This document shows positions 6,001 through 41,387 of a stretch of 64,000 nucleotides of DNA, piece after piece. Position 1 is the first letter of the stretch. Every line of letters starts with the position of its first letter. The notes under the pieces were generated by a model. The model saw nothing but the letters and a program-made list of their open reading frames with translations, had not been told where the DNA came from and ran no database searches. This DNA is from Macrostomum lignano (lineage: Eukaryota). The stretch spans positions 1 through 64,000 of the forward strand of contig NIVC01003156.1 in assembly GCA_002269645.1 (NCBI GenBank), in the 5' to 3' direction. The translations under genes were made by a program, and so were the position numbers.

Positions 6001-6358
6001 GGCTAGTAATTTGTTGGGCATTTATTGGGACATTGCAGCCAGGCCTATTTTTTGAACAGCATTTGTTGGGTCGCACTTATTGGGACAATACTGATTCTAA
6101 TCGCGACTACTTCTGAGTTCTGACTTTTCAAAACAGACCCAGCATTAGTTGAACACGTTCTATTAAAGGGTTCCTTTATAGCCTATTAATGATTACTAAA
6201 GGCAAGCCTATCTTAATTGATTTCTTTTCCTCGCAGATTCTGAAGTCAGCCACGCCAGCGACATGCCTAAGAGACAAGAATGCGCTTTAACGATCAGCAG
6301 CGAGCATTCTGATCTCGCCGCTGCATCCGTCATTTGGTTCACTTGCTGCTCACAAGCC

Positions 6359-8772: not shown

Positions 8773-9392
8773 CATACTATAGTGTGTGCTGGCTTCTGCT
8801 ATAGTGTGGTTCATTTCCGCATCCTTTTACGTAGCATTCTGTGGGTCCGAATAGCTGACATGTACCTTTTGAGTAATTCTAGTGATTGTGTCATAATCAA
8901 TAAAGTACATTTTTATGAACAGTGGAGTTTCGCTACAGAATTGTTTTTTCCCAGTGGCACTAAATGTAGCAAATTTTGTTTATTCAGATCGTAAAATTTT
9001 TTTGATATGTGTCAATGTCGTTTGTCTTCGATAACCTTAAAGTCCCTTGCCATTTACCATCCTGTCTTCTATAATCTATGATCGCTGAAATTATCTGGTG
9101 AAATTTGACGCGCTGATATTATTGCCTTAGTGGAATTCAGCAAGACACCAGGGTTTTTTAATTCTGTTTTAGACAAGTATACATGTACAATCTGTTGTGA
9201 GTTCAATGCACCTCGAAAAATGCTTTCCAACTGTTTTCAGTAAGCCAAAAGCATGTTGTCAATAAAAATCTATTTGGTGGGTTGAAAATTGCCTGTGTGG
9301 GGACGTGTGTGTGTGTGATTTTTCGTGTGTCGGAGCAGTCCCAATATGTGCAAGTTTTTGCACACTTGGCCAATAAGTGCCTCGTGCACGTT

Positions 9393-9909
<517 letters not shown>

Positions 9910-9919
9910 AGAGATTATC

Positions 9920-10200
9920 TATACTCCGACAATAGTGTTACTGCGTCCGAACTCCGAATGTGGAAGCCACAAGCACATAGATATCAAAGCTGTCTGATGT
10001 TGCTCATTAGGATGACACTCATTAGGGCCAACCATCAGGGCGCAGAGAATCGTACACGCTTGACGATTCGAAAGTCAAGGACCCATGTACACCCTGTGTG
10101 AGCGTGTGTATGAGTGCAGTGCCCGCGTACAGTATTGCGCGCTTGTATTGTGCTCAAGAGTTCTTGTTTAGTCAACAGGCCATGACAGTAGAAAAAGACA
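9920..10200 (+). mobile_element. Diverged copy of a dispersed SINE-like repeat (body only recognised)
   Basis: gacgattcgaaagtcaagg...tgtacaccctgtgtgagcgtgtgt...gcgcgcttgtat aligns by eye with 38980-39080 (+) and 23100-23200 (-). Confidence 0.5.
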
Positions 10201-10817
10201 CATTGGTCTTCGCTCCGTTCGGACGCCAGTAAAATCACTGTCTCACTCTCCTATTGACCCCGGGTAGGAAATCATTTAGGTCTTAGTTTACCTATATGCT
10301 GTTGAAACGACCCAGGCCTAATTAATTTTGTTATTATTTTCTCTATAAAAATTCGACAACGCGCAGTGCTTGCACCATTCGTTTACGTCTGCATCCGGCG
10401 TCTGTTTGCCATCGTCGCCTCAGCTACGCATGCACCACCAGTTTAAAGCGTTGCGCTGCGACAAAAAGACCAAGTCTTGTCAGCAGATCAACGTCACGAA
10501 CAGGTTAAACGAGGTTAGACCGAGGGTTGAAGTAATTAATAGTTAATAATTATAATAGTCATGCAGATATCAGCTGCGATACATTATAGTTGTTTTCTAT
10601 CCCCGCTTTCCGCTTGACAAAATTATTATTACCTAGCTATGTTTACATTATTGTTATTAAAATTAGTTCACGCACTGAGGGATTAGTTTTTAGATGGTGG
10701 TCCATTTACCTGCCATCGTTAGCATTCAAGGTGTCGGTTTGGACTTTTGACACTCACTCATTTAAGAAATGTTGTGCTTTGTGTGAGCTAACAGGAATCT
10801 TGTTCATTAATGAACAA

Positions 10818-12112
10818 CCGATTCACCAACCGTGCCAATCAAAGAGTCGCCGATTCACCAATCTTGTCATTCTAAGAGTCGCCGATTCACCAATCTTGTC
10901 ATTCAAAGAGTCACCGATTCACCAATCTTGTCATTCTAAGAGTCACCGATTCACCAATCTTGCCAACCAAAGAGTCACAGATTCACCAATCTCGTCATTC
11001 AAAGAGTCGCCGATTCACCAATCTTGTCATTCAAAGAGTCGCCGATTCACCAATCTTGTCATTCAAAGAGTCGCCAATTCACCAATCTTGTCATTCAAAG
11101 AGTCACCGATTCACCAATCTTGTCATTCAAAGAGTCGCCGATTCACCAATCTTGTCATTCAAAGAGCCGCCGATTCACCAATCTTGTCATTCAAAGAGTC
11201 GCCGATTCACCAATCTTGTCAACCAAAGAGTCACCGATTCACCAATCTTGTCATTCAAGAGTCGCCGATTCACCAATCTTGTCATTCAAAGAGTCGCCGA
11301 TTCACCAATCTTGTCATTCAAAGAGTCACCGATTCACCAATCTTGTCATTCAAAGAGTCGCCGATTCACCAATCTTGTCATTCAAAGAGTCACTGATTCA
11401 CCAATCTTGTTATTCAAAGAGTCGCCGATTCACCAATCTTGTCATTCAAAGAGTCGCCGATTCACCAATCTTGTCAACCAAAGAGTCGCCGATTCACCTA
11501 TCTTGTCATTCAAAGAGTCGCCGATTCACCAATCTTGTCATTCAAAGTGTCGCAGATTCACCAATCTTGTCATTCAAAGAGCCGCCGATTCACCAATCTT
11601 GTCATTCAAAGAGTCGCCAATTCACCAATCTTGTCATTCAAAGAGTCGCCGATTCACCAATCTTGTCATTCAAAGAGTCACCGATTCACCAATCTTGTCA
11701 TTCAAAGAGTCACTGATTCACCAATCTTGTTATTCAAAGAGTCGTCGATTCACCAATCTTGTCATTCAAAGAGTCGCCGATTCACCAATCTTGTCAACCA
11801 AAGAGTCACCGATTCACCAATCTTGTCATTCAAAGAGTCGCCGATTCACCAATTTTGTCAACCAAAGAGTCGCCGATTCACCTATTGTGTCATTCAAAGA
11901 GTCGCCGATTCACCAATCTTGTCATTCAAAGAGTCACTGATTCACCAATCTTGTTATTCAAAGAGTCGTCGATTCACCTATCGTGTCATTCAAAGAGTCG
12001 CCGATTCACCAATCTTGTCAACCAAAGAGTCACCGATTCACCAATCTTGTCCTTTAGACTGCTTTATTAGCTCTCCCATTCAGCGAGCCTCTGATTCACC
12101 AATCCTGTCATT
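10818..12112. repeat. 32-bp minisatellite (gagtcgccgattcaccaatcttgtcattcaaa), ~40 copies
   Basis: Directly visible. The unit is not a multiple of 3, so the same peptide cycles through three frames (ORFs 10590-12128). Confidence 0.97.
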
Positions 12113-13029
12113 AATTTTAGTCTTTTAAACTTGACCAACACAATGGCACTATGTCATATGCATAGCAATAGTCCATTCTTATTAAAAAAATAGCTTATCT
12201 AGTTCGTCATTTTCTCTAATTACAAAGCCTAATTTGCTTAATTAAGTACTCTCAAGTTAGCGCTAAAAGTTTTTTCGCCTACCGCTTACTCAAACCTGTA
12301 GACCACGCAGCCACAATCCCACAACCTTGTTCACCTTAGCAATATTTTGCACCCTTTCTTTATTTACTACGTGTAATTAATGTTAATATTTTTTATTGTC
12401 CAATTACCAGCTATGAAAATAATTTAAATCGTAAACGAGAACTATTTCGCTATAAAAATTCTCACACAGTGCCCCAGTCCTGAAACAGCCAAGAAACGGA
12501 CAGCCACACTGTCTAGATGGCTTCAGATATTTAATTCGGCGTCCAAGGTTGTTTAATTGCGATAATTGTTGCCTTTTTACAATATTTTTTAAAATAGAGC
12601 GATTAGCTAAAATGCACAATAAAATGGCGCTGGAGTTTTCCCAGTTATCTATAGCTAGTGTACTCTTAAGAGTTCATCAACTGTACTATGCATACACCTT
12701 GATGAAACACATAGAGATTCGAGCTAGATTTTGACTGGAGTTTTATTATTGAATACGTCTATAATACTATCACACTAGATTAGTAGATAGTAGTGTTTTA
12801 ATGACACCCCGGCACAATAGCAGCGCTTATTATAAGGCACATTTTTAAAAAGTAAATATCATTCCATGTGGCTGGCGCCGTTTATTCTAGTGTATATGAT
12901 GTACAATCTGTAAAACGATTCTTGACTAGATTTTCTACCCCAAGCGTACATTGTTCAGCTTTTCCCACCGTGTCGTCACTTTAATTTACACCAGATGGAT
13001 AAGAATCGACTGTTAATACACGCAGACAG

Positions 13030-14697: not shown

Positions 14698-17600
14698 AGC
14701 CACAATCGACAGCACACGCATCAAAGGCGGGTGTCTGCGGCCGGCAATAATCAGACAGGCATTGATGGCGTAGCTTCATGCTCATCTGGCGCTGCTGCTG
14801 CTGCTGCTGTTGCCAGCCCAGGGCAGTCCGGCACAGTGCGATTAAAAAAGCCAACCCAATGCGGTATTAAGAGTTATCGCGTGTTGCGTCACGCCTCCGA
14901 GGTTGGCGCCCTATCGTGCGCCAAATTCTGCGAATGTTCGCTAGACGGCGAGCTGCTTGAAACTGGCGACAAAGAGCAGAACGTAGCTGAGGCTGTTGAA
15001 GCCGACAAAGACGGCGGGGAGTTGACGCCTACAGTTCAGGAGGAGATCAACAAAGATGCAGACGATGACTTTGTTAACATCGAATCAATCAATCCGGTAA
15101 TTGTTCAGCAAATATCTTCCAACTCAAGTGTGCCAGAAGCCGGCGTTGAAGCCACGGAATCGCTCGATCTCGGGCAAGAGGCTGCCAGTTCGGCTGACCT
15201 GCCAGTGCATGCCGGTGACGAAAGGATGAAGAATAGCAAGCCAGCACAGCCGCCGCCGCGACCGCCGCCTCCGCAACCGCGTCGACCAGCGTCGCTTGTA
15301 GCTACTGAGGCCGCTGAAGTCGCTCCAGCTCCGTCGTCAGACGCTGCAAGTGCACCGCCGCCATCATCTTCATCATCGTCAGCATCAGCAGTTCCTCCCT
15401 GCCGTTCGCAGTTACTGTCTAAGCGGTACACAGCGCCTAACATCCAGCCATTGAGTTTAGCTCAGCAGCAGCATCAGGTCGCAGCGCAGCAGCAGCAGCA
15501 GCAGCAGTGCCAGCTCTGGGATCTTCGAGACGATACTCTGACATGCAGAAAGCTTAGTAGGCCAGTTAGCTTGACAGCAGCCAATGCCGCTATAGTGCTT
15601 GGTGGCGGTAAGATTCTGGTAACGAAGCTGTACATTTACTCACCAATGCCTAACACCGTGTGCCACCCCTCCCCTCTCCTTTTGCTTTTTTCTTTGCCTC
15701 TCTCCTTCTTCTTTCTCGCATTTTTTCTTCTAATCTTCTCTTCGACGTCGTGTGTGCCTTTTCTCTTTTTGTCTCCTGTCTGTCTGTCTGTCTGTCAATA
15801 TAGGCTAACGGTGCTACTGGCTCGCAGCAGCAGCAGCAGGCGCATCAGCACCATCTGCTGCAGCACTGTCCGTCTAGTGGGAGCTCCGGTTGTCTAGCGT
15901 CGGGTGCAACCGGCACATCCGGGCAGCAGCAGCAGCAGCAGCAACAGCAGCAACAGTCACAGCCACAGCCACAGCAGCCTCCAGCCTCAGCCTCTGGCAC
16001 ATCCGGCAGATACGTTCGTCGTCCAATGCTAGAAAACTCTGGCATCGGCAGTTCCAATTCGGCGGTAGCCGCCGCGGCCAACGCTGCCACGACGCGAGCG
16101 GAGCTGAAACGAGCCCGTAGCCAAGGTCAGACAAGCGATATTGGCCAGCGGTCTGGCCAGCCACCCCACTGTTATCAGCATCAGCCGCGGCACTATCTTA
16201 GAGTTAATTATTCGCACGCCGCGACCCACTTCGTTCGTAGTTTAGAAGAGCCAACCAGTACCGGCCAGGCAGCCTGCTTTCATGCCGCTTCCACTTCGTT
16301 TGGTAGCCAATTATTATTATTTTATTATTATTTTCAATTAGACAGTTGCTAAATTAACTTATTCTGTTAGATTATTGGCGCACCGCTCAAATCAAATATT
16401 CTCCTTTTAGTTATTTATATCTATGTTTTATGTTGTGAATTCTCCGCTATATAAACTGCTGTGTTGCTTTATAAACTGTTTTGCAACTATCTTTCACTCT
16501 AGCCTGTCTCTGGGACTTCCTGACCCGGCCGACTCAAATCTGACCCATTTAAATCCTGGACTCATTTAAATTTCTGACCCATTTGAGTCTCTGACCCATT
16601 TGAGTCTCTGACCCATTTGACTCTCTGACCCATTTGAGTTTCTGACCCATTTGAGTCTCTGACCCATTTGACTCTCTGACCCATTTGACTCCCTGACCAA
16701 TTTGAGTCTCTGACCCATTTGACTCCCTAACCCATTTGACTTTGACCCATTTCACTCCCTGACCAATTTGAGTCTCTGACCAATTTGAGTCTCTGACCCA
16801 TTTGACTCCCTGACCCATTTGACTCCTGACCCATTTGAGTCTGACCCATTTGACTCCCTGACCAATTTGAGTCTCTGACCCATTTGACTCCCTAACCCAT
16901 TTGACTTTGACCCATTTCACTCCCTGACCAATTTGAGTCTCTGACCAATTTGAGTCTCTGACCCATTTGACTCCCTGACCAATTTGACTCCCTGACCCAT
17001 TTGAGTCTGACCCATTTGACTCCTTGACCCATTTGAGTCTCTGACCCATTTGACTCCTTGACCCATTTGAGTCTCTGACCCATTTGACTCCTTGACCCAT
17101 TTGAGTCTCTGACCCGTTTGACTCCCTGACCCATTTGACTCTCTGACCCGTTTGACTCCCTGACCCATTTGACTCTCTGACCCATTTGACTCCCTGACAC
17201 ATTTGAGTCTCTGACCCATTTCACTCCTTGACCCATTTGAGTCTCTGACCCGTTTGACTCCCTGACCCATTTGACTCTCTGACCCATTTGACTCCCTGAC
17301 ACATTTGAGTCTCTGACCCATTTCACTCCTTGACCCATTTGAGTCTCTGACCCGTTTGACTCCCTGACCCATTTGACCATTTGGTCCATCATAAAGTTGC
17401 AACTCTATATTTAATCATTGTAGTCAGTCTCGCCTTACTTTATAATTTGTGTTGTATACCGCAATTTTTTGTGTTTTACCCTGTTGTTATTAAGATTATA
17501 AACTATTCAGTAACAATCATATGACATCGTTTTATATGCATGCCCTTTTGTATTTCGTCTTAACATCGGTACTAAACTTTCTGCATCACTTTTCGATTAT

Positions 17601-20600
17601 GAAAATGTTATTTAGATCATTTGATATTCATCTAAAACACCATATTCCCTATTCCCTCACAATTTGCTAGTCGTGCGTCTAATCTCAAGTCTATTCTGAT
17701 CTAATCTATCCTATCTCTTCAAGATGACGAGAAAACTCCTTCACTGCATGTTAGCATGTCAGCTGTGTGCGTATGTATGTATGTAAATTACATGTGGATG
17801 TTATAGAAACAGTGATGTGCTAGATACTCGTAGATAAACGTCTCTCCTGGTTAACAAGATTGGTTGAGTTTGAGTTTTTGTCTACAAAAACTTGTAGCGA
17901 TAGCGAATTTGGGGGGGGGGGTCAGATCAAATTAAAGATTTGAAAAAAGGTTCCAATATAAATTAGGTACAGTTTTATACTACTTACTAAGTAAGTAGCG
18001 TAAAAGTATCTGCTTAGATTTTTTGTGTGGATGAATTCAAATTTCGGTAAATATACGTTGGGTTTAAAAAAATAATTTAATGGAATAAAAGTGCAATTAT
18101 TGTCTTAGTATTAATACTGCATGCCACAGTGCCGTGTCGTTGTGTCTGTGAGTAGATTATGTGAATTATTGTCTGTGAGTATGTCTAGTGATTGATATCT
18201 AATATTCCTTATTAGATTTAATTTACCACTGTTTTTATTTTATTTTGTCAGATAAGACCGACAATTTCTCTCGCTCGTGCAGCAGCAGCACTTCGAGTCT
18301 GGAGCACTGCGCCAAGGAGTCTGTGATGCTGCTCAGCTTTGCTAGTGCTCATCTAAAGAAAACTGGTGAGTGAGAGTGGAGACTTATTTACGAATTCAGT
18401 ATATCGCTTCTCTTTAATCTACTCTCATCTGCTCTCCGATTGAGACCGTGATCTTATCCTATTCATATCTTCCAGTCATCTCAATCCCTACTAATAGATT
18501 CTATCTGTTCTATCTGTATTTACTCTGATCTACTCTAGAATCTAATCTACCATCTACTCTGCAATCTACCCTAGAATCTAATTAATCTACAATCTACTCT
18601 GCAATCTACTCTAAAATCTACTCTTACGATCTATTCTGCAATCTACTCTAGAATCTAATCTACAACTTACTTTGCAATCTACTCTGCAACCTGATCTACA
18701 ATCTACTCTTACGATCTAGTCTGCAATATATTATGCAATCTACTTTGCAATCTACTCTACAATCTACTCTAGCATCTACTCTACAACTTACTCTGCAAAC
18801 TATTCTGCAACCTGATCTACAATCTACTCTTGCGATCTACTATAAAATCTACAACGATCAACTCTTCTATCTACTTTATAATCTACTCTAATTTACTCAT
18901 TGTTATCGTCAATCGATATTTCGCTGACAACCCCCCCCCGCCCCACCGCAGACACTCAGCCAACGCCAACTCTGTGGATCGGCACCTCTCTCGGGGCGAT
19001 CTTCCCAATCCGTATCCAGCTGCCGTCAACGGAATCCGCGCGCTCCGCGCAGCCCGTCGTAGCCGCGCCATCCGGCACCGTCATCAGGATGCTGGGCGCC
19101 ATACAGGACGTGTCCATCTTGACCGCGCCACCGCCAACTGCTGAAGACACTCAGCTGATTTGCCTCTGCTCGGATAAGCAGGTTCGAGTTCTGTGCCTGC
19201 CTTCGTTAACCTGCTGCGCTAAAAAGAAACTCACTGAGACGTCGACAGTTGCTAAGGCGGCTGTTTCGCTAGTCAGAGGCTACCCTTGCCTTGTCTGTCT
19301 GCTGGCCAACGGGCATATCGTTGTTAACTCTTTGCCTGGACTGAAACCGCTAATGGATATTGATTATGCACCGTTCGTGGACTTCAGGTAAGTTTAACGT
19401 TCGAAAAACTAAATTTTCATTATTACGTCACTATTTACTGGTAAAACTCTAGCTTTATTGCTATTTTCTTATATTTCTACTTCATAAGTAGTGAAATTAA
19501 AAAAAAATTGATTGTTTAAATTTTCCTATTTTCGATGGAAAAATATAGTTTCAACCTTTTCTTTACTTTCTACTTCGATAGTAGCGAAAAACGGACATCT
19601 GCGTTTTAATTTTCATCGATACAATTAGAAACCAACAATAAATATTACGGAAATTTTTAGGCGTGTTTTAGATAGAGACAGCTATTTGATCAGGTATTTA
19701 CACATAATTTTGTGAAAGTGTGCCAATAAATTTACTTGTCATTTTGGTTTCTGGTGTGTATTCAAATTTTGCTTACAAAATTCATTTTTAGTCAGCTTCA
19801 AACAAAATTTGTGTGTCTTGCTACTTAAAGTAGGGAAAATGCACTCTTCCTACGAAAAATCAATATTTCAATAAGTAAAATTCAAAACTCATTATCGCTT
19901 TTTGTGTCAGCATTGAAACACTTATTTTTTTAATATCGATATTAATTTGGCACTCACTTTTTGTTGAGCTTTTCTCAATTTTTTTCACAGGTGTGTTGCT
20001 TCACTGTTAGTTTCGGTTTTCGTGTTATCATTGAACTTCATAAGCGTATGATTGATAAAACTGCTGCATTGGTTTTATGACATCATTTTAAGAATATTCT
20101 TTCTGATGGATATCATCCTGAGCACAGTATCTTTGAGAATCTCAACCTGATGTCTCACCTTGAGCACAGTGTCTTTGAGAATCTCAACCTGAGGTCTCAC
20201 CTTGAGCACAGTGTCTTTGAGAATCTCAACCTGAGGTCTCACCTTGAGCACAGTGTCTTTGAGAATCTCAACCTGAGGTCTCACCTTGAGCACATTTTCT
20301 TTGAGAATCTCAACCTGAGGTCTCACCTTGAGCACAGTGTCTTTGAGAATCTCAACCTGAGGTCTCACCTTGAGCACATTTTCTTTGAGAATCTCAACCT
20401 GAGGTCTCACCTTGAGCACATTTTCTTTGAGAATCTCAACCTGAGGTCTCACCTTGAGCACAGTTTCTTTGAGAATCTCAACCTGAGGTCTCACCTTGAG
20501 CACAGTTTCTTTGAGAATCTCAACCTGAGGTCTCACCATGATCAGAATTTTTTCGCTTGGCAGCTTTTTCAAAAAACACAGTGAATGATATAATGTACTA

Positions 20601-21872
20601 GCCAAAATTTAAATTCATTAGTGTTTCTGTGATGTTTTTTGGACTTTTTTCGTCTAGTAATAGATCCTGTTAGTTTAAACAAAAAAGTTTTGAACGATGC
20701 ACGTTTAGTAAATTTTATAAGCTTTTTCGAATTGAGTTTGCTTTACTTTTAGCTGACCTTTCAACAAATTTGACCAAAACGATTAGTTAACAACTTTTAA
20801 ACAAATTTTGTTATTCCAGGTTCAGTCGCACTTTCCAGTGCAGCAATCACGGTCACGCCGTTTACTTTTGTTCGCCAAGCGAAGTACAAAAAATCACCAT
20901 CTGCAGCGATATATGGTCAGTGTTGCGTCATTTCTTTAAAAAACTTCATGACTTTCGAGCATTAAAAAATCGATATTTCTACTTTCAGTAGCTAAATTAG
21001 AACGCAAACTGTTTTTTCTGTATTTTTTCAGCAACGATCTAAACGACATGCTGGCCGATTTGTACACGCCCTGCGATCTGCCGGAGCCACCCAAAAAGAG
21101 TCTGTTTGAAAAGTTTGGCCAAAATCTGTTTGGCAGCGCCAGCGCCGCACCTGTAGATCGCGAACAGATCTGTGAGTATTTATTATTCTACTGAAACTAA
21201 ATTTTTTGAAAAGAGAATTAAAAATAAATTCATCGTTTAACTTGCGTTATCAGTTGGCGAGGCCGCTGGAAAGCCAGCGTCAGGCATTTGCACTGTGAAG
21301 CAGGGCGGCCCACAGCAAAACATGGAAGCTATAAGGGCTCGCGCCGGCGGGGCCAGCTCTGAAATTGCCAACGCGCTTCAGGCAAGTTTTCTGTGTAAAA
21401 CATTTTTATTAACTTTAAACCCACCACCCCATTCCCGGCCAGAGCGTCATGTCAAACCCCAACCAACCCCCAACCACCACCCCATTCCCAGCCAGAGCGT
21501 CAAGTCAAACCCCAACCAACCCCCAACCACCACCCCATTCCCAGACAGAGCGTCAAGTCAAACCCCAACCAACCCCCAACCACCACCCCATTCCCAGCCA
21601 GAGCGTCAACCCCACCACCAAACCCACCACCCCTTCCCCAGACAGAGCACCAACCCCCCTTCTTCGACCCGCTAGCCCAATCAAAAGCAAGCAACTCGCT
21701 AACCAAACGCTGGCTACCCCTCCTACAGCAAGGCCTCGAGCGAGGCGAAAAGCTTGGCGAACTGGACGAACAAACCGAGCGAATGCGCAACTCCGCTCTG
21801 GAGTACCGCAACGTCGCCAGCCAATTGGCCCAAAAGTACAAAGATAAAGACAAGAAATTTTGGCAGTTTTAA
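14698..21872 (+). CDS. STXBP5: Tomosyn (syntaxin-binding protein 5 / Lgl family), 3' exons: 14698-15607 or -15618, 15804-16125, 18252-18365, 18952-19387, 20820-20915, 21032-21171, 21254-21381, 21729-21872
   Basis: The hand-spliced product has tomosyn hallmarks: DNFSRSCSSSTSSLE, TLWIGTSLG, PSGTVIRMLGAI, CLLANGHIVVNSLPGLKPL, RTFQCSNHGHAVYFCSPSE, LYTPCDLPEPP, VDREQIFG, and the C-terminal R-SNARE ERGEKLGELDEQTERM...KYKDKDKKFWQF*. Exon phases agree across the last six exons. The first two listed exons are low-complexity and less certain. The N-terminal WD40 exons were not found in the window. Confidence 0.92.
16520..17392. repeat. ~17-bp minisatellite (ctgacccatttgagtct / ctgacccatttgactcc) in a tomosyn intron
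   Basis: Directly visible; gives the GQxVKWVRESN ORFs. Confidence 0.95.
18500..18895. repeat. Degenerate ~12-bp repeat (aatctactctgc) in a tomosyn intron
   Basis: Directly visible. Confidence 0.85.
20123..20540. repeat. 42-bp minisatellite, ~10 copies, in a tomosyn intron
   Basis: Unit ttgagaatctcaacctgaggtctcaccttgagcacagtgtct; open as a 14-aa repeat on both strands. Confidence 0.95.
21418..21660. repeat. C/A-rich ~53-bp minisatellite (~4 copies) in the last tomosyn intron
   Basis: Repeats of aaaccccaaccaacccccaaccaccaccccattcccagacagagcgtcaagtc. Confidence 0.85.
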
Positions 21873-23024
21873 CTTTAGAATTTAGAAGCACGATCAGTGC
21901 TACACTACACATTGTGTATCAATATTGTAGGATATTGTTATTCGTGCTTAATTAAGTCTGTCTTGCCCCGGATATAATAACAACATTTTTATAACAATTG
22001 TGTTTATCTGTTGTATGGTTTCAATATTTTTATAAAAAATATTTAATGCGACCAATTTTAGGCATGCACGGGCGTCACTAGTAATGTTAGCTAATAACAG
22101 AATAACAACGAAGCATATAGCAGCATATATTTTTAGTTTTAGTTAATTGGTAACCCTTGTCGTTAAACTGTTTGGTGTCACCCAATCAATAGTTTTATTT
22201 TTTTGATTTTTTTTTATTTAAACGTATGGTCCTTCATCCGCTTCTTTCTCGTGTTAATCGTTAAATTTTTGTTAATGGCGTTGTGGTAAAATCGTTCCGG
22301 ATTTTTAGAAATCTGTGAACGTTTAATCTCAGTAATATCAGTTCACACTTTTTTTCCAGATTCATCCAATAAATACGTTAATATTAATTTCTAAAAATTA
22401 ATTCGTCCTAAATTGTAACTATTTCGCGCTTATTAGCATTGAAATATTTCACTCATAATTACATCGTGAATTTTGCATTAATAACCGTTTTGATTGCAAT
22501 TTACAAATTCTAGTTCTTGTTGTAGTTGCTGAAGATTGTTGTACACCATCTTCGCTATATTTTACTAGAAAAGCATAGTATATCTCCTAACTCCCTAAGC
22601 AGTTTGTGTACTTTCATTCCGCCATTTTTTATGCATAATTTATTTAAAGTTGTAATTCTAGCAAGCTTGTACATTGTTGTTTAATTGTTATATAGATAAC
22701 AGTTGATATTTTGTTCTGGAAAATATTTTTGTTCGTTGCACACGCTTACAAAGATTCCGTAATTTTCCTCTGATCTAAGTGATTATTTATTGTTTTTATT
22801 GCATTAGCAAGAAAGCGAGCTATTCTTGTAGTCAAACTTTCTTCGAAATTATTTTATTTCCATTATTAGAAGGTCGAAATTAATTTATACAATATACTAA
22901 AAAATCAAATTTCTCAATGCACTTTTGTGATGCAAAATTGGCTCTAAATTCAATGTCACGCCCATAAAAATGTCGCCTGACAGTCAGGCTGGGTTACTGA
23001 TTCAGTCTTTTTTATTTTTTATCA

Positions 23025-23360: not shown

Positions 23361-23670
23361 CTTATCGGCACTTTATTGCTTTTAACATTCTAGTCTTATG
23401 TTCAGTGGCTGGCAGACTAAAATACTGCCAACCTCTCTCCGTCTTTTTTATTACTGAGTTCAATTCAGCTTTCTGTCCTTGCCTCGATTCTCATTGGCTG
23501 ACGCCAGTCACACCACCCTATAGCGCCGCCAACCTCACTACGCTGTCGTTCTATCCCTCCAGTTTAATTGCTCGGCCCCTCACAGCAGTTCACAGCTTCA
23601 ACCCTCTGTTCCTCTCCGCATTCTCATTGGCTATCGTTAGTCTGAAATCAATCTTCATTGATAATAGCTA

Positions 23671-24176
23671 GTGGCGCCGATTCAGACTGAGTGGTGCCAA
23701 TTCGGATTGAGTGGCGCTGATTCGGCGCCGATTCGGATTGAGTGGCGCCGATTCGGACTGAGTGACGCCGATTCGGACTGAGTGGCGCCGATTCGGATTG
23801 AGTGGCGCCGATTCGGATTGAGTGGCGCCGATTCGGATTGAGTGGCGCCGATTCGGATTGAGTGGCGCCGATTCGGATTGAGTGGCGCCGATTCGGATTG
23901 AGTGGCGCCGATTCGGACTGAGTGGCGCCGATTCGGATTGAGTGGCGCCGATTCGGACTGAGTGGCGCCAATTCGGATTGAGTGGCGCCGATTCGGATTA
24001 AGTGGCGCCGATTCGGACTGAGTGGCGCCAATTCGGATTGAGTGGCGCCGATTCGGATTGAGTGGCGCCGATTTGGATTGAGTGGCGCCGATTTGGATTG
24101 AGTGGCGCCGATTCGGACTGAGTGGCACCGATTCGGATTGAGTGGCGCCGATTCGGATTGAGTGGCACCGATTGAG
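23671..24176. repeat. 20-bp minisatellite (gagtggcgccgattcggatt), ~25 copies
   Basis: Directly visible. Confidence 0.97.
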
Positions 24177-24609
24177 TGTTAAAAACGGTTGCGCACAGAG
24201 AGATTTTGAAAGACAGCGTACTTTTTTAAGTTAGATACATGTTCGATCTATAATTAGATTTCTTAAATAAGCGGTTTACGCGCAGTCAGGAATGTTGAAA
24301 CTGATGCGCGCACAGGTGTACTATATAACTTTGTCGATGTCACTTTCCAATTTAGGTAGAATAGCTAAAGGAATAAACACCCGACCAATCTGTTTAAAAA
24401 TTAAATTTAACTATTCAAAGGCATCACCATATATCAGTTTAGTTACAGTTTGTCAACGCTAAATTTATCTAAAATAAATTCATCTATGCTGTCATCTTCT
24501 AAATTTATTAGCTCATTCCGACTACATAAAAACTCGCTCTGAAAAATATTCTCATTAATGAAGCAACCGAATTTGAAAGGTTTTGTTTTAAATAAAACTA
24601 ATCAGCTAT

Positions 24610-24932
24610 ATGGATTTCGTTAAGGTTGGAAAATCTGGCAAGTCACTGAGCCTGACAAGAAAAAGCAATATTGACGGTTACAAGGATATTTGCATCATCA
24701 AGGACATCGAGGTGTGTAACGTTGCACTATTGATTTCGTGTATTATTAAATTTGTGTCTCTGCTCAATATGCAAGTCACTGGAATATTCTGCAGAGACGA
24801 GGTGCCGCAGTCAAGCAACTGGCAGACAATGCATCCAGAATGCGAATGACTTCTGCGCAATTCAACGATCTTGCGGAGAAACTTGCTCAAAAGCACAAAG
24901 CGAAAGATAGAAAACTTTGCACCCTACTGTAA
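24610..24932 (+). CDS. Putative two-exon 79-aa tomosyn-like R-SNARE microprotein ending in a CaaX box (exons 24610-24711, 24795-24932)
   Basis: Phase-0 GT-AG intron of 83 nt. Exon 2 RRGAAVKQLADNASRMRMTSAQFNDLAEKLAQKHKAKDRKLCTLL* aligns without gaps over the SNARE core to tomosyn ERGEKLGELDEQTERMRNSALEYRNVASQLAQKYKDKDKKFWQF*. There is an in-frame stop upstream of the ATG. Confidence 0.7.
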
Positions 24933-25447
24933 ATTCTGACAATTATAATTTTGCGTGCAAACATACAAACTCAAATTCGCGTTTATAATATTCCAGTGAT
25001 GCCGCTAGTTTTGATTTTGTTTTAATCTGTTCTACTATATGCATTTATTCTTTAATATCTAACAAGCTGTCTTGAAAAAGCCTTGTCACATAACATGTAC
25101 ATCTAAGTCGATTCGGCTGTACATTATATGTTTGATATTTATTCAGATCTCTAGTAAGATTTTGACCTTTTCTGTCATTTTACGTTTGAACAATCAAACT
25201 TTTCTGTTATTAACTGGCTTTATAAACGCTATAGGTTTTCATATTAGAAAGTTTTTCACAAACGCTACTTTCTACTTGTACCAGTAGTGCAGCTTGCGTA
25301 TTACGAGAAAGAGTAAAGCTTTTGTAAGAATGTATTGTAGCTATTTAGTTACACTATTAAATCAATAATTACTGGCAGATTTACTTTAGATTGGCTCAAT
25401 ATATATAAAGCTTCAATTAAATGACTTATGTTCTTGATGAAACTATT

Positions 25448-26072
<625 letters not shown>

Positions 26073-26190: not shown

Positions 26191-26487
26191 TCACTTCTCA
26201 GCGCGCACTCGCAGAGTCCTGACTCGATCTTGGATCACCTTGCGCAGTCGCTCTTCCTCTTTGACGTTGATCAGCACCAGCACGTCGTTGTCGGTGACGC
26301 CGCAAGCGTACAGCGATGCGACGTCCTGCAGAACCTCCGCCTTGAAGATCAGCTTCATTTCGGTGACTGTCTCCGGGAACGATCGGATGGCGAGGTGGAC
26401 TCGCTGTTTGAGTTGCAGCACAGAGAACCAAGGCGGGCAGTCAATCAGATAGGCTCGCCTGCCGTGCAGAATTCTAATGCGGATCAT
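26191..26487 (-). CDS. Small intronless ubiquitin-like domain protein (~98 aa), no C-terminal di-Gly
   Basis: MIRIRILHGRRAYLIDC...SVLQLKQRV...MKLIFKAEVLQD...LYACGVTDNDVLVLI follows the ubiquitin beta-grasp pattern (compare ubiquitin RLIFAGKQLED...LSDYNI), followed by a charged helical tail. Confidence 0.75.
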   Translation of the reverse strand: MIRIRILHGRRAYLIDCPPWFSVLQLKQRVHLAIRSFPETVTEMKLIFKAEVLQDVASLYACGVTDNDVLVLINVKEEERLRKVIQDRVRTLRVRAEK

Positions 26488-26682
26488 TGAGTCTTTAAGT
26501 TGATTATTTATAATGATTTTAATCAAAACAAAACATCTATGTTAAACTTTGTCCGATTCTATATCGTTTCTACATCTTTAATCTATAACTGCATGAGCAG
26601 CTGAAGCCATAGACTACGTGCTAACAATTTGGTGTTTCGGCCAAGGTTCAAAAAGGGTCTGCTACTGCACTAGCGTGAGTAG

Positions 26683-28493: not shown

Positions 28494-29753
28494 TCAGACA
28501 GTGGTCACGGTGAGCTCAGTGTGCGAAGGTTGATTGTGGTAGTCCTTCTGCTTGATAAGCTGCTGCTGCTGCTGATGCTGCTGCTCTGCTTTTCCTCGAC
28601 TGGTCCTGGTGGCCAGAGCAACAGCCGTCTGCTGCTGACTACGGTGTCTGTACAGGGCCGATTTAATCGACTTGCCTTTGGCCTCGCGAAGTCGTTGAAC
28701 CCGATCCTCAGCGGCCAGGCAGCAGCTGCAGCCGGGGCAGAGTCGATGACAGCGCAGGGCCACCAGCAGCTGGGACACAACAAGCAACGATCGCCGCCTG
28801 AACGAGCGCACGAACACCAGGTACACCCAGAAGTTCAGCACGTAGTTGAAATCCTTCACAGACGAAGTGAATCGAGAGTTGTGCGACAGGAAAGCGGCGT
28901 ACTTGGCGTGCTGCTTCTGGTAGGCCTCGGGCCGGCTCTCGAACACCTGGCGAACGCAGATGCTGACAGCCAGAGGGAGGACCAGAATGCAATAGGCGAT
29001 CGCCAGGGTCAGGTGGGCATAGAACCTGCTCATCTCCATCTGATTGTCGGCAGCTGTTGGCAAGATACTCGCTCTATTGCGTCGAATCACTGTCAGCTTG
29101 GCCACGATCACAACGCCCAGGAGGCAGACAATGACAGACGGCACAACGAACGAACCGAACGTCATGAAGTAGAGCATGACGCGAGACAGGCTCCGGTTGA
29201 CGCCGCTCTGTGCTTGAAGCTCGCACTTGCGCTCAAGCTGGAGACCAATTTTACTAGTGTTCTGCAGTTGAATATCGTGAATGAGAGCCATCGGCAGCAT
29301 CAGAGTCAGGCCGCACAGGTAAGTTAACCCGACAATCAGCAGAGTAGGTTTGATGTAAAAATGTGACATAAACTGTAACGGCCGGAATATGGTCAGCGTG
29401 CGGTCCAGACTGAATATGATGAGCAGATAAGACGAAGTGAAGTAGGCCACGCTGGGAATGTACTCCATCAGTTTACAGGTGACGCTGGATATAGTGTCAA
29501 TCTTGATAAGAATTGCTCCGCCAGACGCGTACCAGAGTCCCCGGCCAAGAAAGTCGTCCAGAAACGTGTTAAAAATCAGCGCAAACGTGTCCGAGACGGC
29601 TATAGCGATGCCATACACGGCGAACCGGGTCCAGCGACGGCTTCCAGCATTTTCCAGCAGGAATATGGCCATTGTTGTCACGTTGCCAAGCAGTCCGAAA
29701 AGTACAACGCCAGGCATGACGTAACCGCGAAGTATGCCAACTGCATCGTCCAT
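28494..29753 (-). CDS. Class A (rhodopsin-like) GPCR, peptide-receptor-like, intronless CDS (~419 aa; the N-terminus may extend)
   Basis: Seven hydrophobic segments; GLLGN (TM1), IAVSD (TM2), C in TM3, DRT in place of DRY, NFWVY...FR in TM7/helix 8. Confidence 0.9.
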   Translation of the reverse strand: MDDAVGILRGYVMPGVVLFGLLGNVTTMAIFLLENAGSRRWTRFAVYGIAIAVSDTFALIFNTFLDDFLGRGLWYASGGAILIKIDTISSVTCKLMEYIPSVAYFTSSYLLIIFSLDRTLTIFRPLQFMSHFYIKPTLLIVGLTYLCGLTLMLPMALIHDIQLQNTSKIGLQLERKCELQAQSGVNRSLSRVMLYFMTFGSFVVPSVIVCLLGVVIVAKLTVIRRNRASILPTAADNQMEMSRFYAHLTLAIAYCILVLPLAVSICVRQVFESRPEAYQKQHAKYAAFLSHNSRFTSSVKDFNYVLNFWVYLVFVRSFRRRSLLVVSQLLVALRCHRLCPGCSCCLAAEDRVQRLREAKGKSIKSALYRHRSQQQTAVALATRTSRGKAEQQHQQQQQLIKQKDYHNQPSHTELTVTTV

Positions 29754-30566
29754 AATGATGTAGTGATCTCTATCAAACAAACGTTCCCTGTTTGCGCAAG
29801 AAGATTTTTAGGTCAGACAGTCAGCCGCATCCGCGATATTTAGGTTTCATTCTCGGATAAGCAAAGAAATTTGGGTGGGCAGAAGCCCGTCAACCAATAG
29901 GAGAGAAACTGCTCACTCATAGCTCAGTTTGGGCCCTGCCGGAGAAGAATTCGAAATTACTGATTGCCGTCCTGTTTCCAGCCTGTGCGCCAGCAAGTGA
30001 CAAACTGGATTTCCCGCCCCCCCCCCCCCCCGACTGGGGATGCGCTCTCCAGCTCTGTCAGCGCAGCGTCAGTCACTGCAACTTGCATCCTTCTGCGCTT
30101 AGTTTATGGGAAACGCAATTTGTCAAACTCATTCCCCATCTAGGCTGGCTCTCAGCAGCTCCCCTCAACCCTTAGTTGGTCCTCAAGCCGAAAATGCTTT
30201 CTTTGCTCATACCAGAGATTGGGATTTCCTCCCATGCTAGGGCGCGTCGCTTTACAAGTTACCACGAGGCTCTCAAGCTGTGGCTGAAGACTCCCGCTTG
30301 AGTCTCTGCGGCATCCAGCGGCCGCCCGCCCAAGGAAAGGCAGAGTGGCTCAAAGAGCTTCACTGTGGCATTCTGCTGATGGCCTTCTTATCCGGGCTTC
30401 CTCATCTGCGAAAGAGGCATCAGGGAGCAGAAGTAATACCCTTAATCTCAGCTTGTCTAGGAAGCCAAAACCAAAATCCCTTTTTATAACCCCATTCTGG
30501 GCAAAAATCCCCGTGTGTCTTTCGTAGTTTTGTAGCATGTTTATCAACAAAAAATCCCCTCATGCC

Positions 30567-38367: not shown

Positions 38368-40261
38368 CTAGTCTTCCTCTTTGATCTCCTTCAACATCTG
38401 CATGTGCAGCTGGCCCAGGCTGCCCGTTCTACCGCTGGTGGCCTGAGCCGCTGCAGCCACTGCCGCCTGAGACTGGAACACCCCTGGATTGCGCTTCATC
38501 TCCAAGCGGTCGACCATCTCTGCGGCAGCTCGGCTGGCTGACCAGTTCGGGCAGAGCGCCACAAGGCGGAGTCGGACAAAGGCGAACGCCAGGGCGAGCT
38601 GAACTCGACGCCTGAAGCTGCGAACGAATATCAGATAGACCCAGAAGTTGATGGCGTAGCTGATGTCCTGAAGTTTGGTTGATCGATTAGTTTGTAGAGA
38701 TGCTTTTTCTGGTTCAAAATAGCGATAGAAGTACCCTAGCATGCTGCATGATAGCTGCGTACATTACAACTTGCATACTTCCTTGCTGGTACTCGCTTCC
38801 TGAATTCTGGCCCGGCAGAGCAGCTGAGTGATAAACGAGTCTGACGCTCTTGCGCCACGACCCAGCTGGTTCGATTCCACATTTATTTGGGGCTTGAGCA
38901 TAAAAAATGGCCTGGGGTTGTCGTTGTTGCGATTGACATCCATGTGGGCCGACTCCCCATAGGCACAGAGTGCATATGCCTGACGATTAAAAAAGTCGGG
39001 ACAGCTCATGCTCCCTGTGTGAGTGTGTATGAGTTCGTGTCTGTGTATGGTACTGCACCCACCGCTTGTACACAGGAGTGCTCATGTGCTCTGGAGTAAG
39101 CGGAATGACCTGAATTGCCTGAGCACCAGTTAAATGACAATGTCGCTGTAATGTAGATCTATCTACCTGGTCTATTATTTCTGTCATAGCTCAAAGGAGT
39201 GATGCAAGCAGTGCTCGAAGCCCACTGGACTAGTGACAAAAATAGAACTAGTACTCAAAAATCACGTCTTTTTGGCTTTTCTAGCATGACAACATCGAGC
39301 GTATACGCACCTTGACGGAGTCCAGCAGCTTGGCGGCCTGTTCAAGGACGTGACACCGGCAGCTCGGTCGAGGCTCGCAGAGGCCGCAGCCCGTCCTCAT
39401 CACGATCACTACGCAGAGCGGACTCGACAGCAGACAGAAGGTGATGGACACCGCCAGGTTGGCATAGTAACGCGACATCGCCAAGTCTTTATCCTGTGAG
39501 CCGGGCAGCAGGTCGCGTCTCAAGCGTCTCACCTGAATAAGCTTGGCAACAATGGCCGCACTGAGTGCCGCTTGCAGTAGGCATGGAGCAACAAATATTC
39601 CGAATGCTTTAAAGTACAGGATGTACTTTGCTGCTGAGCTTGACTGTCCTCCATCGGTGCAGTTCAAAGCGATTCGACAGCTAAACGACATGACATCCTC
39701 GTAGCCGGCGGTCTCCAGTCCATAGACCGCGATCACCGGGGACATGAGAATCAGGCCGAGGACTGCCACAGAGACTGCTGCAGCCACAGACTGAGTCACA
39801 TACCGGTGAGTCATCATTCGCATCGGCTGACTCACTGTCAGCAGTCGGTCAGCTGAGAATATCACTAGCAGGTAGGACGAGGCGAACAGTGTCGAGTGTT
39901 GCATGTACTCGAGCAGTCGGCAACTCATCGGATGAGAGGCATCGAGCTTCAGCACCTCACTACCGTAAATGTGAGCCAAGCCTCTGCCAAGGAAGTCGTC
40001 GATGAAGCTGCTGAAGATAAGCACGCTGGAGTCCGATATCGCCAGAGCTACACACCAGATACCAAATCGGTTCCATCGCGACAGCCGAGCCTCCAGTGAG
40101 AAGATTGCAATTGTGAGAGCGTTCCCGAGAAGGCCCAGAATCACAATGGCAGGCGAACCAATTGCCCTGGTGGCACCGACTCCGTATCTTAGACGGTTCT
40201 CGAACTTGTCCGAACAGTTGTCCGGCCAGTGGTGCGAGAGCTCTCGGACGCCGTCAGGCAT
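38368..40261 (-). CDS. Second class A GPCR, paralog of the 28.5-kb receptor; exons 40261-39311 and 38667-38368
   Basis: Shares DDFLGRGL, SYLLxIFSxDR, MSRxYA and SVK|DxxYxxNFWVYLxFVRSFRRR with the first receptor; phase-0 GT-AG intron at 39310-38668. Confidence 0.88.
38810..39140 (+). mobile_element. tRNA-derived SINE-like element inside the GPCR intron
   Basis: B-box GGTTCGATTCC at 38868-38878 is followed by cacatttatttggggct, which is shared with the 23-kb copy; the body is shared with the 10-kb copy. Confidence 0.6.
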
Positions 40262-41387
40262 GCTGCGAGGTTGCAAGCCTTTGGAGAGTGAAAGTTGGAG
40301 ACAGTATTTCTGTAAAATACGTGCAATGGATTGTAACAAAACTTTTTTCACAGGAATACTTACAAAGATCCTGTTATCCCTTCTGTTTCAGTTAGGTTGT
40401 TCTCGTTAAACAGTATTTAAGTTGACGCAAACAAGAACGTTTTTTACTGCTGACCTAGAATTCGCCCCTTTGCCCGTTCTGACAAACTGTTTGCTTTCCT
40501 GTTGCATCGCATGGGGATGTGCCAGGGGTTTTTACCTATTATCTGGTTTGCTGGTGCCTGTACACCGAAGCAGTGCAGTGAAGGTAGCTCGGGTGGTGGC
40601 AGAGAGATACAGATAGAATGCTGCACAGAAAGGATCATTCGGTAAGGTTGTAGGATATTTTCGTCCCAGCTTAGGATGTTCTATATACCCAACGCTGAAC
40701 CGCTCGTTAAACCCTTGCAGAATGCATCTTAACTGCAAGCTGGAAGGGGGGTAAGGGATGACTGAAGGTAGACTAGGCTGGGTTATGGCCTATCGACCAG
40801 AAGCTAAAACCCGTTTGCTTCTTTGGCGATCTTACCCTACATATGCTTACCCATAAATTCTACAGCTATAGGCCATGCAGCTTTATAATAAATTGTATCA
40901 TGGTGCTTCGAATCGAGCTACACCGCGATAATCAATGGTATTGGTGTTAGCACCAGAGTACCCAACAAGTTCGTGCAACCTACGTAGAATGCTTAAAATT
41001 AAGAAGGGTAGTTTTTATCTGATAGGAAGAAATGGTCAAAAAGTAGATGAGAGCTTGAACAAGTGCGTCAAGGATAAAAGAAGAGTCAAAGGCATTTGGA
41101 GAGTCAAGAAATGAAATTCAATAGAAGAATATACTTTAAAACCAACATAAATTGGTTAAACAACGCAAAAAGATCCCGACAATAATGTCACTGACATGGT
41201 CAGAAGTGACATTTAAAAAGGTCGATGTATATATGTACGAGTATATAGACAAAATTTCGTGAATTTGGATTAATTAATTAATGATTTTCGCGGCGACTCG
41301 CAGCCATGAAGGCCATGCAACCTTGCTTTTACATCTTGCTTTCTTGCTTTTACAAAATTATTAATACTACGACAGATGGTGTGTTTC

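Follow-up and report, generated by a model that had tools for sequence, protein, structure and literature searches.

Introduction

Does a small reading frame downstream of a tomosyn (STXBP5) gene encode a SNARE protein of its own, or is it a part or a relic of its large neighbour? The question is raised by a 64-kb window of Macrostomum lignano DNA (the whole stretch analysed here, i.e., positions 1 to 64,000 of contig NIVC01003156.1). Next to tomosyn, a two-exon model of 79 residues joins a short 5' exon to an exon that resembles the tomosyn C-terminus and ends in a CaaX box. We tentatively read it, with a probability of roughly 0.4, as a lineage-restricted M. lignano gene. Judged from its sequence, this gene would combine a duplicated last exon of tomosyn with a recruited 5' exon that provides the ATG, and would encode half an R-SNARE with a geranylgeranylation signal.

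Results

Anatomy of the two-exon model

All feature coordinates are collected in Table 1. Reading and translating positions 24400-25200 reproduces the anatomy that an earlier inspection of the letters (the sequence-only reading) had proposed. That is, removal of an 83-nt GT-AG intron leaves a frame for the 79-aa peptide MDFVKVGKSGKSLSLTRKSNIDGYKDICIIKDIERRGAAVKQLADNASRMRMTSAQFNDLAEKLAQKHKAKDRKLCTLL*, whose C-terminus is KHKAKDRKL-CTLL. In exon 2, R-SNARE layers 0 to +8 are followed by a basic linker and by CTLL, and the last codons are TGC ACC CTA CTG TAA. The list of open reading frames (ORFs) indeed misses this product: from the same ATG it holds just the unspliced read-through 24610-24849, which lacks the SNARE frame of exon 2.

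Although it had been called hidden, the gene is on record in public databases. A two-exon 79-aa model is already present in UniRef as an uncharacterised predicted M. lignano protein (UniRef100_A0A1I8IDN3, also in MetaClust) and is the sole match in a word-indexed search. It equals the spliced peptide except for M52T, i.e., the exon 1 peptide is unchanged and CTLL is intact. Its title, "V-SNARE coiled-coil homology domain-containing protein", implies a match to the PROSITE V-SNARE profile, as judged from naming practice. M. lignano assemblies hold about 180 Mb in blocks of at least 95% identity (PMC5730564). Given so many near-identical blocks, the M52T copy is a recent duplicate or an allele and says little on constraint.

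With regard to splicing, the acceptor before 24795 agrees with the CAG motif of the species, whose donors follow GT[G/A]AG (PMC8629364). The intron is close in length to the neighbouring tomosyn introns (about 78-80 nt). A spliced-leader trans-splice acceptor just 5' of the ATG was considered and dropped as uninformative, since AATCAG/CTAT fits only the CAG of the YTNCAG motif. An in-frame NILQ before the acceptor recalls the NALQ of tomosyn. We put it down to splice-site consensus; a stop codon (24747-24749) lies in frame 15 codons 5' of the acceptor. An Rfam search of the whole window returned no RNA families.

Exon 2 is probably an old duplicate of the tomosyn terminal exon

Exon 2 aligns with the terminal exon of tomosyn without gaps and with 15/43 identical residues (pairwise E 9e-9). 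In a tblastn search of the whole window, this exon is the single non-self match (E 1.8e-6; runner-up E 0.28). Against a profile of 11 tomosyn tails, hhalign aligns residues 31-71 (E 2.4e-5, probability 76%). Respective BLOSUM scores are 81 and 74 for the two M. lignano tomosyns compared with 41-50 for other R-SNAREs.

The alignment confirms the local tomosyn duplicate of the sequence-only reading, with the zero-layer Arg and the C-terminal layers kept. The layers +1 to +8 read V,L,A,M,S,F,A,L in the peptide and L,L,T,M,A,Y,A,L in tomosyn, and LAQK.K.KD.K is common to both, as had been described. Around the zero layer, ERGEKL of tomosyn has become RRGAAV. The core shares 12/36 residues with tomosyn, while the two M. 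lignano tomosyn paralogues share 29/36, so the exon 2 copy is old, fast-evolving, or both.

The full heptad motif of 16 layers (-7 to +8, about 53 residues) is absent: layers -1 and -2 are I,I, and the positions of layers -3 to -7 hold D,D,S,L,S. The N-terminal half of the motif, earlier called poorly conserved, is in fact missing, as exon 1 is unrelated and predicted to be of beta type. A single-sequence AlphaFold2 model (pLDDT 69, low reliability) places strands at 4-9, 12-18 and 25-31 and helices at 37-49 and 54-67. Taken together, the hhalign range, the layer residues and the predicted strands restrict the SNARE part to layers of about -2 to +8. Pfam finds no WD40 or Lgl_C match and no longin match in the 79-aa product, and a PH-like domain is likewise absent from an N-terminal region of just 34 aa. 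The earlier statement that the product lacks WD40, longin and PH domains is thus correct.

Exon 2 probably diverged as coding sequence

At the DNA level, exon 2 and the tomosyn terminal exon are 52.5% identical, and blastn of exon 2 and its flanks against the tomosyn locus matched nothing. A segmental duplication was considered and rejected, since the flanks show no similarity when compared at the DNA level. With DNA-level similarity gone from exon and flanks, the duplicate has to be old, yet it is still open. As far as sequence can tell, a genuine and ancient duplication of the tomosyn terminal exon is the probable origin of exon 2.

Identity at codon positions 1, 2 and 3 is 20, 27 and 16 of 40, respectively, i.e., position 2 exceeds position 3 (Fisher p = 0.024). 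As a neutral background, we evolved the tomosyn exon in simulations to the observed divergence with the local base composition. Here, the frame stays open in 3.75% of the runs (P = 0.0375), and at least 7/8 hydrophobic layers are kept in 5.4% (P = 0.054). Both occur jointly in 0.28% (0.0028). An excess of position 2 over position 3 of the observed size is found in 1.65% (p = 0.0165). The bias among codon positions, the uninterrupted ORF and the preserved heptads all speak for coding evolution of exon 2, in this frame and through most of its history.

Exon 1 and the relation to the tomosyn gene

Upstream of 24795, there is just one combination of an in-phase ATG-ORF with a donor. We drew 5000 random upstream regions of matched composition, and 0.36% of them offered an in-phase ATG-ORF that spans at least 34 codons and ends at a donor with at least 5/6 consensus positions. 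Relaxed criteria (at least 20 codons, donor at least 4/6) raise this to 7.7% of the same regions. Since the thresholds were chosen after seeing the data, the fair figure lies between 0.36% and 7.7%. It is improbable that exon 1 arose by chance. Its likeness to a SNARE is limited to I27/I30/I33 near layers -2 and -1.

These numbers bear on the possibility that exon 2 belongs to tomosyn itself, as an alternative 3'-terminal exon spliced from the penultimate exon (...SSEIANALQ, end 21381). Tomosyn would then have an isoform of full length whose C-terminal SNARE half is divergent and closes with a CaaX box, and 24610-24711 would be spurious or a minor 5' exon as in tom-1B. Both exons lie on the same strand, exon 2 being 2.9 kb 3' of the canonical stop, and alternative exons often arise by tandem exon duplication. 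Given the donor CAG/GCAAGT at 21382, both junctions are in phase 0, and the hybrid ...EIANALQ/RRGAAV sets L and I at layers -1 and -2. However, the boundary is off by three codons, such that three residues are lost and the heptad register with layers -3 to -7 is broken. The junction also needs a rare GC donor, as the GT donor at 21386 gives the wrong frame. Furthermore, exon 1 with its ATG, open frame and good in-phase donor is left unexplained. A 0.5-kb satellite and an AATAAA at 22368 intervene, and we found no database protein that joins a tomosyn body to the exon at 24795. To our knowledge, the isoform diversity of tomosyn resides in the hypervariable region and not in the SNARE exon. Described isoform diversity comprises 5' exons and 'alternative splicing' (PMC10112904). 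We thus regard an alternative tomosyn exon as rather unlikely, and the same holds for the full-length isoform that it would produce.

Two long bacterial proteins contain Ig/I-set-like repeats whose E-F strand region is similar to part of the exon 1 peptide (24610-24705, DFVKVGKSGKSLSLTRKSNIDGYKDICIIKD). Identity is 12/31 per repeat (LS.T...DGY...CI..D), and the score is summed over 3-6 repeats. We treat this as a weak, repeat-inflated likeness rather than as homology. It could hint at an Ig-exon origin of exon 1, while a chance match inflated by the repeats is probable. The window contains no other Ig-like exons.

A candidate geranylgeranylation signal at the C-terminus

The sequence-only reading had described a CaaL box behind a polybasic stretch, and CTLL does precede the stop with KHKAKDRK directly upstream. 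With regard to novelty, the description stands in part: the polybasic part is inherited from the tomosyn stretch KYKDKDKK, whereas the exchange of Trp for Cys and the end that is longer by one residue are new. That is, Cys76 is located at zero layer +40, where tomosyn has a conserved Trp (TGG vs. TGC). The transmembrane region of synaptobrevin-2 begins at zero layer +39/+40. If lipidated, Cys76 would thus set the helix at the normal membrane distance of a v-SNARE.

The tail shows the sequence features of a substrate of geranylgeranyltransferase I (GGTase-I), i.e., Cys at -4, an aliphatic a2, X = Leu and an adjoining basic region. Geranylgeranylation is promoted by Leu as the last residue, and GGTase-I benefits from a polybasic domain nearby (PMC12197051).

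Using tomosyn tails in a profile search, we retrieved 81 short tomosyn-tail proteins. The end KKWYQ[LF] is present in 63/81, with close variants in 7 more, and none of these tails of other animals carries a genuine CaaX box. The one apparent exception, the Opisthorchis viverrini tomosyn fragment X801_00387 (P0079, 78 aa, ...KDKCTSF), was rejected as a gene-model artefact. On KV891503.1 (6001-6881), KDKCTSF is reached via a long splice, while the genome is contiguous at 6004-6237 (...KYEKKDKWWGWP) and reads ...KDKWWGWP. Beyond this locus, the comparison of Cys76 covers the near-identical second M. lignano copy only.

The protein might also be real and expressed but soluble, with CTLL unused by GGTase-I. 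It would then act as a free peptide of the tomosyn/TOM-1S type or have a non-SNARE function. We consider this improbable. The typical context for GGTase-I is a C-a-a-L box with a2 = Leu and X = Leu that follows basic residues (PMC12197051), and the Cys sits exactly at an otherwise highly conserved Trp, which suggests a specific change of tail function. The soluble variant draws on the Thr at a1, on the rating of CTLL and its flanking residues by the CaaX pattern alone, and on tomosyn and TOM-1S, which work without anchors (PMC10112904).

Gene or relic

Several observations weigh against a functional gene. The donor GTGTGT deviates at +4 from the splice motif of the species, and no canonical AATAAA is found within 280 nt of the stop. 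Similarity searches for relatives of the peptide return little: an exhaustive phmmer search of 1.84 billion representatives yields the M. lignano entry and the two bacterial Ig-repeat proteins without any orthologue, and a metagenome scan yields no relatives. A sequence search of the PDB gives no significant SNARE (VAMP8, E 1.2). The test with a synaptobrevin hidden Markov model, suggested along with the original proposal, has a mixed outcome. Pfam Synaptobrevin (PF00957) matches residues 30-78 with E 2.2e-4, but the 21.4 bits stay under the cut-off of 26.4 bits. A Cys at -4 with an aliphatic a2 can also come about by chance via TGG to TGC. Finally, the M. lignano database entries are all predicted models of the A0A1I8 type. 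We take these accessions to be an automated MAKER annotation of the first (ML2) assembly and thus no proof of transcription; the MAKER model could presumably have been seeded by protein homology to tomosyn. The lack of M. lignano proteins derived from Logan or transcriptomes was dropped as an argument against expression, as tomosyn too has entries of the A0A1I8 type only. Within the genus, genomes exist for M. cliftonense and M. hystrix (PMC10468722).

Some of these points would be expected from a non-functional relic or a gene-prediction artefact. Here, exon 2 would once have been constrained, e.g., in a duplicated tomosyn that was lost, while the ATG-exon and CTLL would be fortuitous. The lack of orthologues in the phmmer and metagenome scans and the Pfam score agree with this, as does the setting in an AT-rich, repeat-flanked island between the satellite at 23670-24173 and (TTAG)n at 25449-26071. 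Furthermore, models of the ML2 type are fragmentary and error-prone, such that the public tomosyn fragment P0002 omits part of the SNARE exon. A similar annotation error made the pseudo-CaaX KDKCTSF in the Opisthorchis fragment. On the other hand, DNA similarity has vanished, yet the copy is open, free of indels and heptad-preserving with position 2 exceeding position 3. A good donor follows exon 1 in phase (p about 0.004-0.08). The second genomic copy keeps all 79 codons bar one substitution, which is a weak point since the copies are very recent. All in all, we consider a relic or artefact unlikely.

Discussion

Comparison with known SNARE systems

The peptide shares with tomosyn/STXBP5 a homologous C-terminal R-SNARE half, the zero-layer Arg, the lack of a transmembrane domain and the presumed target syntaxin/SNAP-25. 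Unlike tomosyn, it has neither WD40 propellers nor layers -7 to -3, and KKW(Y/W)Q(F/L) is replaced by RKLCTLL. The original claim that no such architecture is described holds in part. A WD40-less SNARE-only tomosyn product is known from Caenorhabditis elegans: in vivo, TOM-1B/TOM-1S shows activity and works against the long isoform (PMC10112904). What sets the M. lignano peptide apart is the half motif with CaaX end. TOM-1B/TOM-1S likewise places the tomosyn R-SNARE region, free of WD40, behind a short unique 5' exon. However, TOM-1S uses the normal tom-1 SNARE exons, whereas exon 2 is a separate diverged duplicate 2.9 kb past the tomosyn stop and outside the annotated tomosyn unit.

The engineered yeast proteins Snc1-CIIL and Sso2-CIIL carry a CaaL box in place of the transmembrane domain after the SNARE helix, which for Snc1 is an R-SNARE. 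Once geranylgeranylated, Snc1/Sso2 reside on membranes, join SNARE complexes and block fusion in a dominant manner at a stage past docking (PMC2192637). They are artificial and have full-length SNARE motifs, while prenylation and inhibition are predicted from sequence for the M. lignano peptide. With regard to the layers covered (about -2 to +8), the closest counterparts are syb(49-96) and other Vc-type fragments, which occupy the membrane-proximal half of syntaxin/SNAP-25 in the 'deltaN' complex. The acceptor complex of syntaxin/SNAP-25 is made more stable by syb(49-96), which zippering then displaces (PMC5986196). Such fragments give way to the full-length R-SNARE; they differ from the peptide in being synthetic, soluble and synaptobrevin-derived. 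We know of no described natural counterpart of fragments of the syb(49-96) type.

Ykt6 (longin, R-SNARE and CCaaX) and amisyn/STXBP6 (PH and R-SNARE) are also R-SNAREs without a transmembrane domain. The peptide shows no specific sequence similarity to either protein and lacks a PH domain. Compared with Ykt6, it has no longin domain and a single Cys with X = Leu rather than a double prenylation signal of the CCAIM type. Ykt6 itself is prenylated (PMC12001115).

Possible mechanism

From the sequence anatomy we infer how the gene might be transcribed and spliced, prenylated and engaged with binding partners, and in which direction it might act. An old duplication of the last tomosyn exon would have been followed by the gain of an own 5' exon with a start codon. 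GGTase-I would geranylgeranylate Cys76, and the lipid together with the basic stretch would hold the helix on the membrane. There, the half-motif may bind the membrane-proximal half of syntaxin/SNAP-25 acceptor complexes, such that the half R-SNARE would reside on the membrane and there inhibit exocytic SNARE assembly, or serve as its placeholder, much like the SNARE motif of tomosyn. With neither a transmembrane domain nor N-terminal layers, it should act as an inhibitor or placeholder and not as a fusogen. The precedents ggSnc1/Sso2, syb(49-96) and TOM-1S also point to inhibition or placeholder activity instead of fusion. The role as a fusogen that the sequence-only reading had offered besides that of a decoy is therefore unlikely, as the lipid-anchored precedents ggSnc1/Sso2 inhibit fusion dominantly (PMC2192637). 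We put forward with considerable doubt this stronger claim of a natural geranylgeranyl-anchored half R-SNARE microprotein, which would be placed on the membrane and fill that half of Q-SNARE acceptor complexes which is next to it.

The tomosyn gene and its surroundings

Table 1. Positions of the small two-exon model and of the C-terminal tomosyn exons within the window.
Feature	Position	Strand	Remarks
Exon 1	24610..24711	+	102 nt, 34 codons, ATG to donor, residues 1-34, MDFVKVGKSGKSLSLTRKSNIDGYKDICIIKDIE
Intron	24712..24794	+	83 nt, GT-AG, phase 0, GAG/GTGTGT ... TTCTGCAG/A
Exon 2	24795..24932	+	138 nt, 45 codons and TAA, residues 35-79, RRGAAVKQLADNASRMRMTSAQFNDLAEKLAQKHKAKDRKLCTLL
Arg36 zero-layer codon	24798..24800	+	aligns with the invariant R of ERGEKL in tomosyn tails (11 tails and the local exon)
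Basic juxta-anchor stretch KHKAKDRK	24891..24914	+	residues 67-74; homologous to tomosyn KYKDKDKK
CaaX box C76-T-L-L79	24918..24929	+	X = Leu; then TAA at 24930-24932
Tomosyn (STXBP5) terminal exon, parent-type sequence	21729..21873	+	QGLERGEKLG...KKFWQF*; ends ...ERGEKLGELDEQTERMRNSALEYRNVASQLAQKYKDKDKKFWQF*
Tomosyn penultimate exon (N-terminal half of SNARE motif)	21253..21381	+	ends ...ANALQ, phase 0, donor CAG/GCAAGT; phase fits acceptor 24795
Further tomosyn C-terminal exons	about 15930-16301, 18251-18364, 18951-19388, about 20806-20949, 21027-21171	+	

The public tomosyn fragment A0A1I8JK79 (P0002) maps onto the upstream exons with 100% identity; the other M. lignano tomosyn is the paralogue A0A1I8I8I2. 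The last tomosyn intron (21382-21728) has an apparent GC donor (CAG/GCAAGT). The model A0A1I8JK79 splices instead from ACT/GTGAAG at about 21294 and thereby drops the N-terminal half of the tomosyn SNARE motif. This half is conserved in the paralogue (P0003) and in other species, and the public model is probably wrong at the last-intron splice. The fragment also lacks the exon 20806-20949, which matches ...IRTFQCSNHGQAVYFCSPSELQKITLSSE of the paralogue P0003 and other species.

Repeats are found throughout the region. The small gene is flanked by a 20-bp satellite (23670-24173, AGTGGCGCCGATTCGGATTG, about 25 copies) and by (TTAG)n (25449-26071, about 156 copies), and a 53-bp repeat of 3.6 copies (21421-21609) lies inside the last tomosyn intron. 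Minisatellite arrays in or by tomosyn introns (9300-12130, 16550-17400, 20075-20605) give rise to spurious ORFs of 170-330 aa, with the repeat units CLSV, SPIHQSCHSKS, GQRVKWVRESNGS and VRPQVEILKE. Beyond the tomosyn locus, the window contains a ubiquitin-like ORF convergent with the small gene (26191-26526, minus strand, E 1e-4), two intronless rhodopsin-family GPCR ORFs (28494-29780 and 39281-40351, both minus strand; 7tm_1, E 1e-17 and 3e-15) and a reverse-transcriptase fragment in a GC-rich block (44854-45795, plus strand).

Implications

An unexpressed model would be an ordinary relic and would illustrate how automated gene models can look functional. With expression and prenylation, its product would represent two firsts among natural proteins: a lipid-anchored regulatory R-SNARE of tomosyn origin, and a SNARE fragment confined to the membrane-proximal layers. 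As an endogenous counterpart of the ggSNARE and deltaN-fragment tools, it would provide a new way to clamp or prime exocytosis. That is, cells would use for fusion control the principle of a C-terminal fragment on the acceptor complex, which has so far been seen in vitro only. It would also illustrate gene birth by terminal-exon duplication with a recruited 5' exon, in which a single exchange of Trp for Cys makes a membrane anchor. Since transgenesis and RNA interference are established in M. lignano, the idea is testable in the organism itself.

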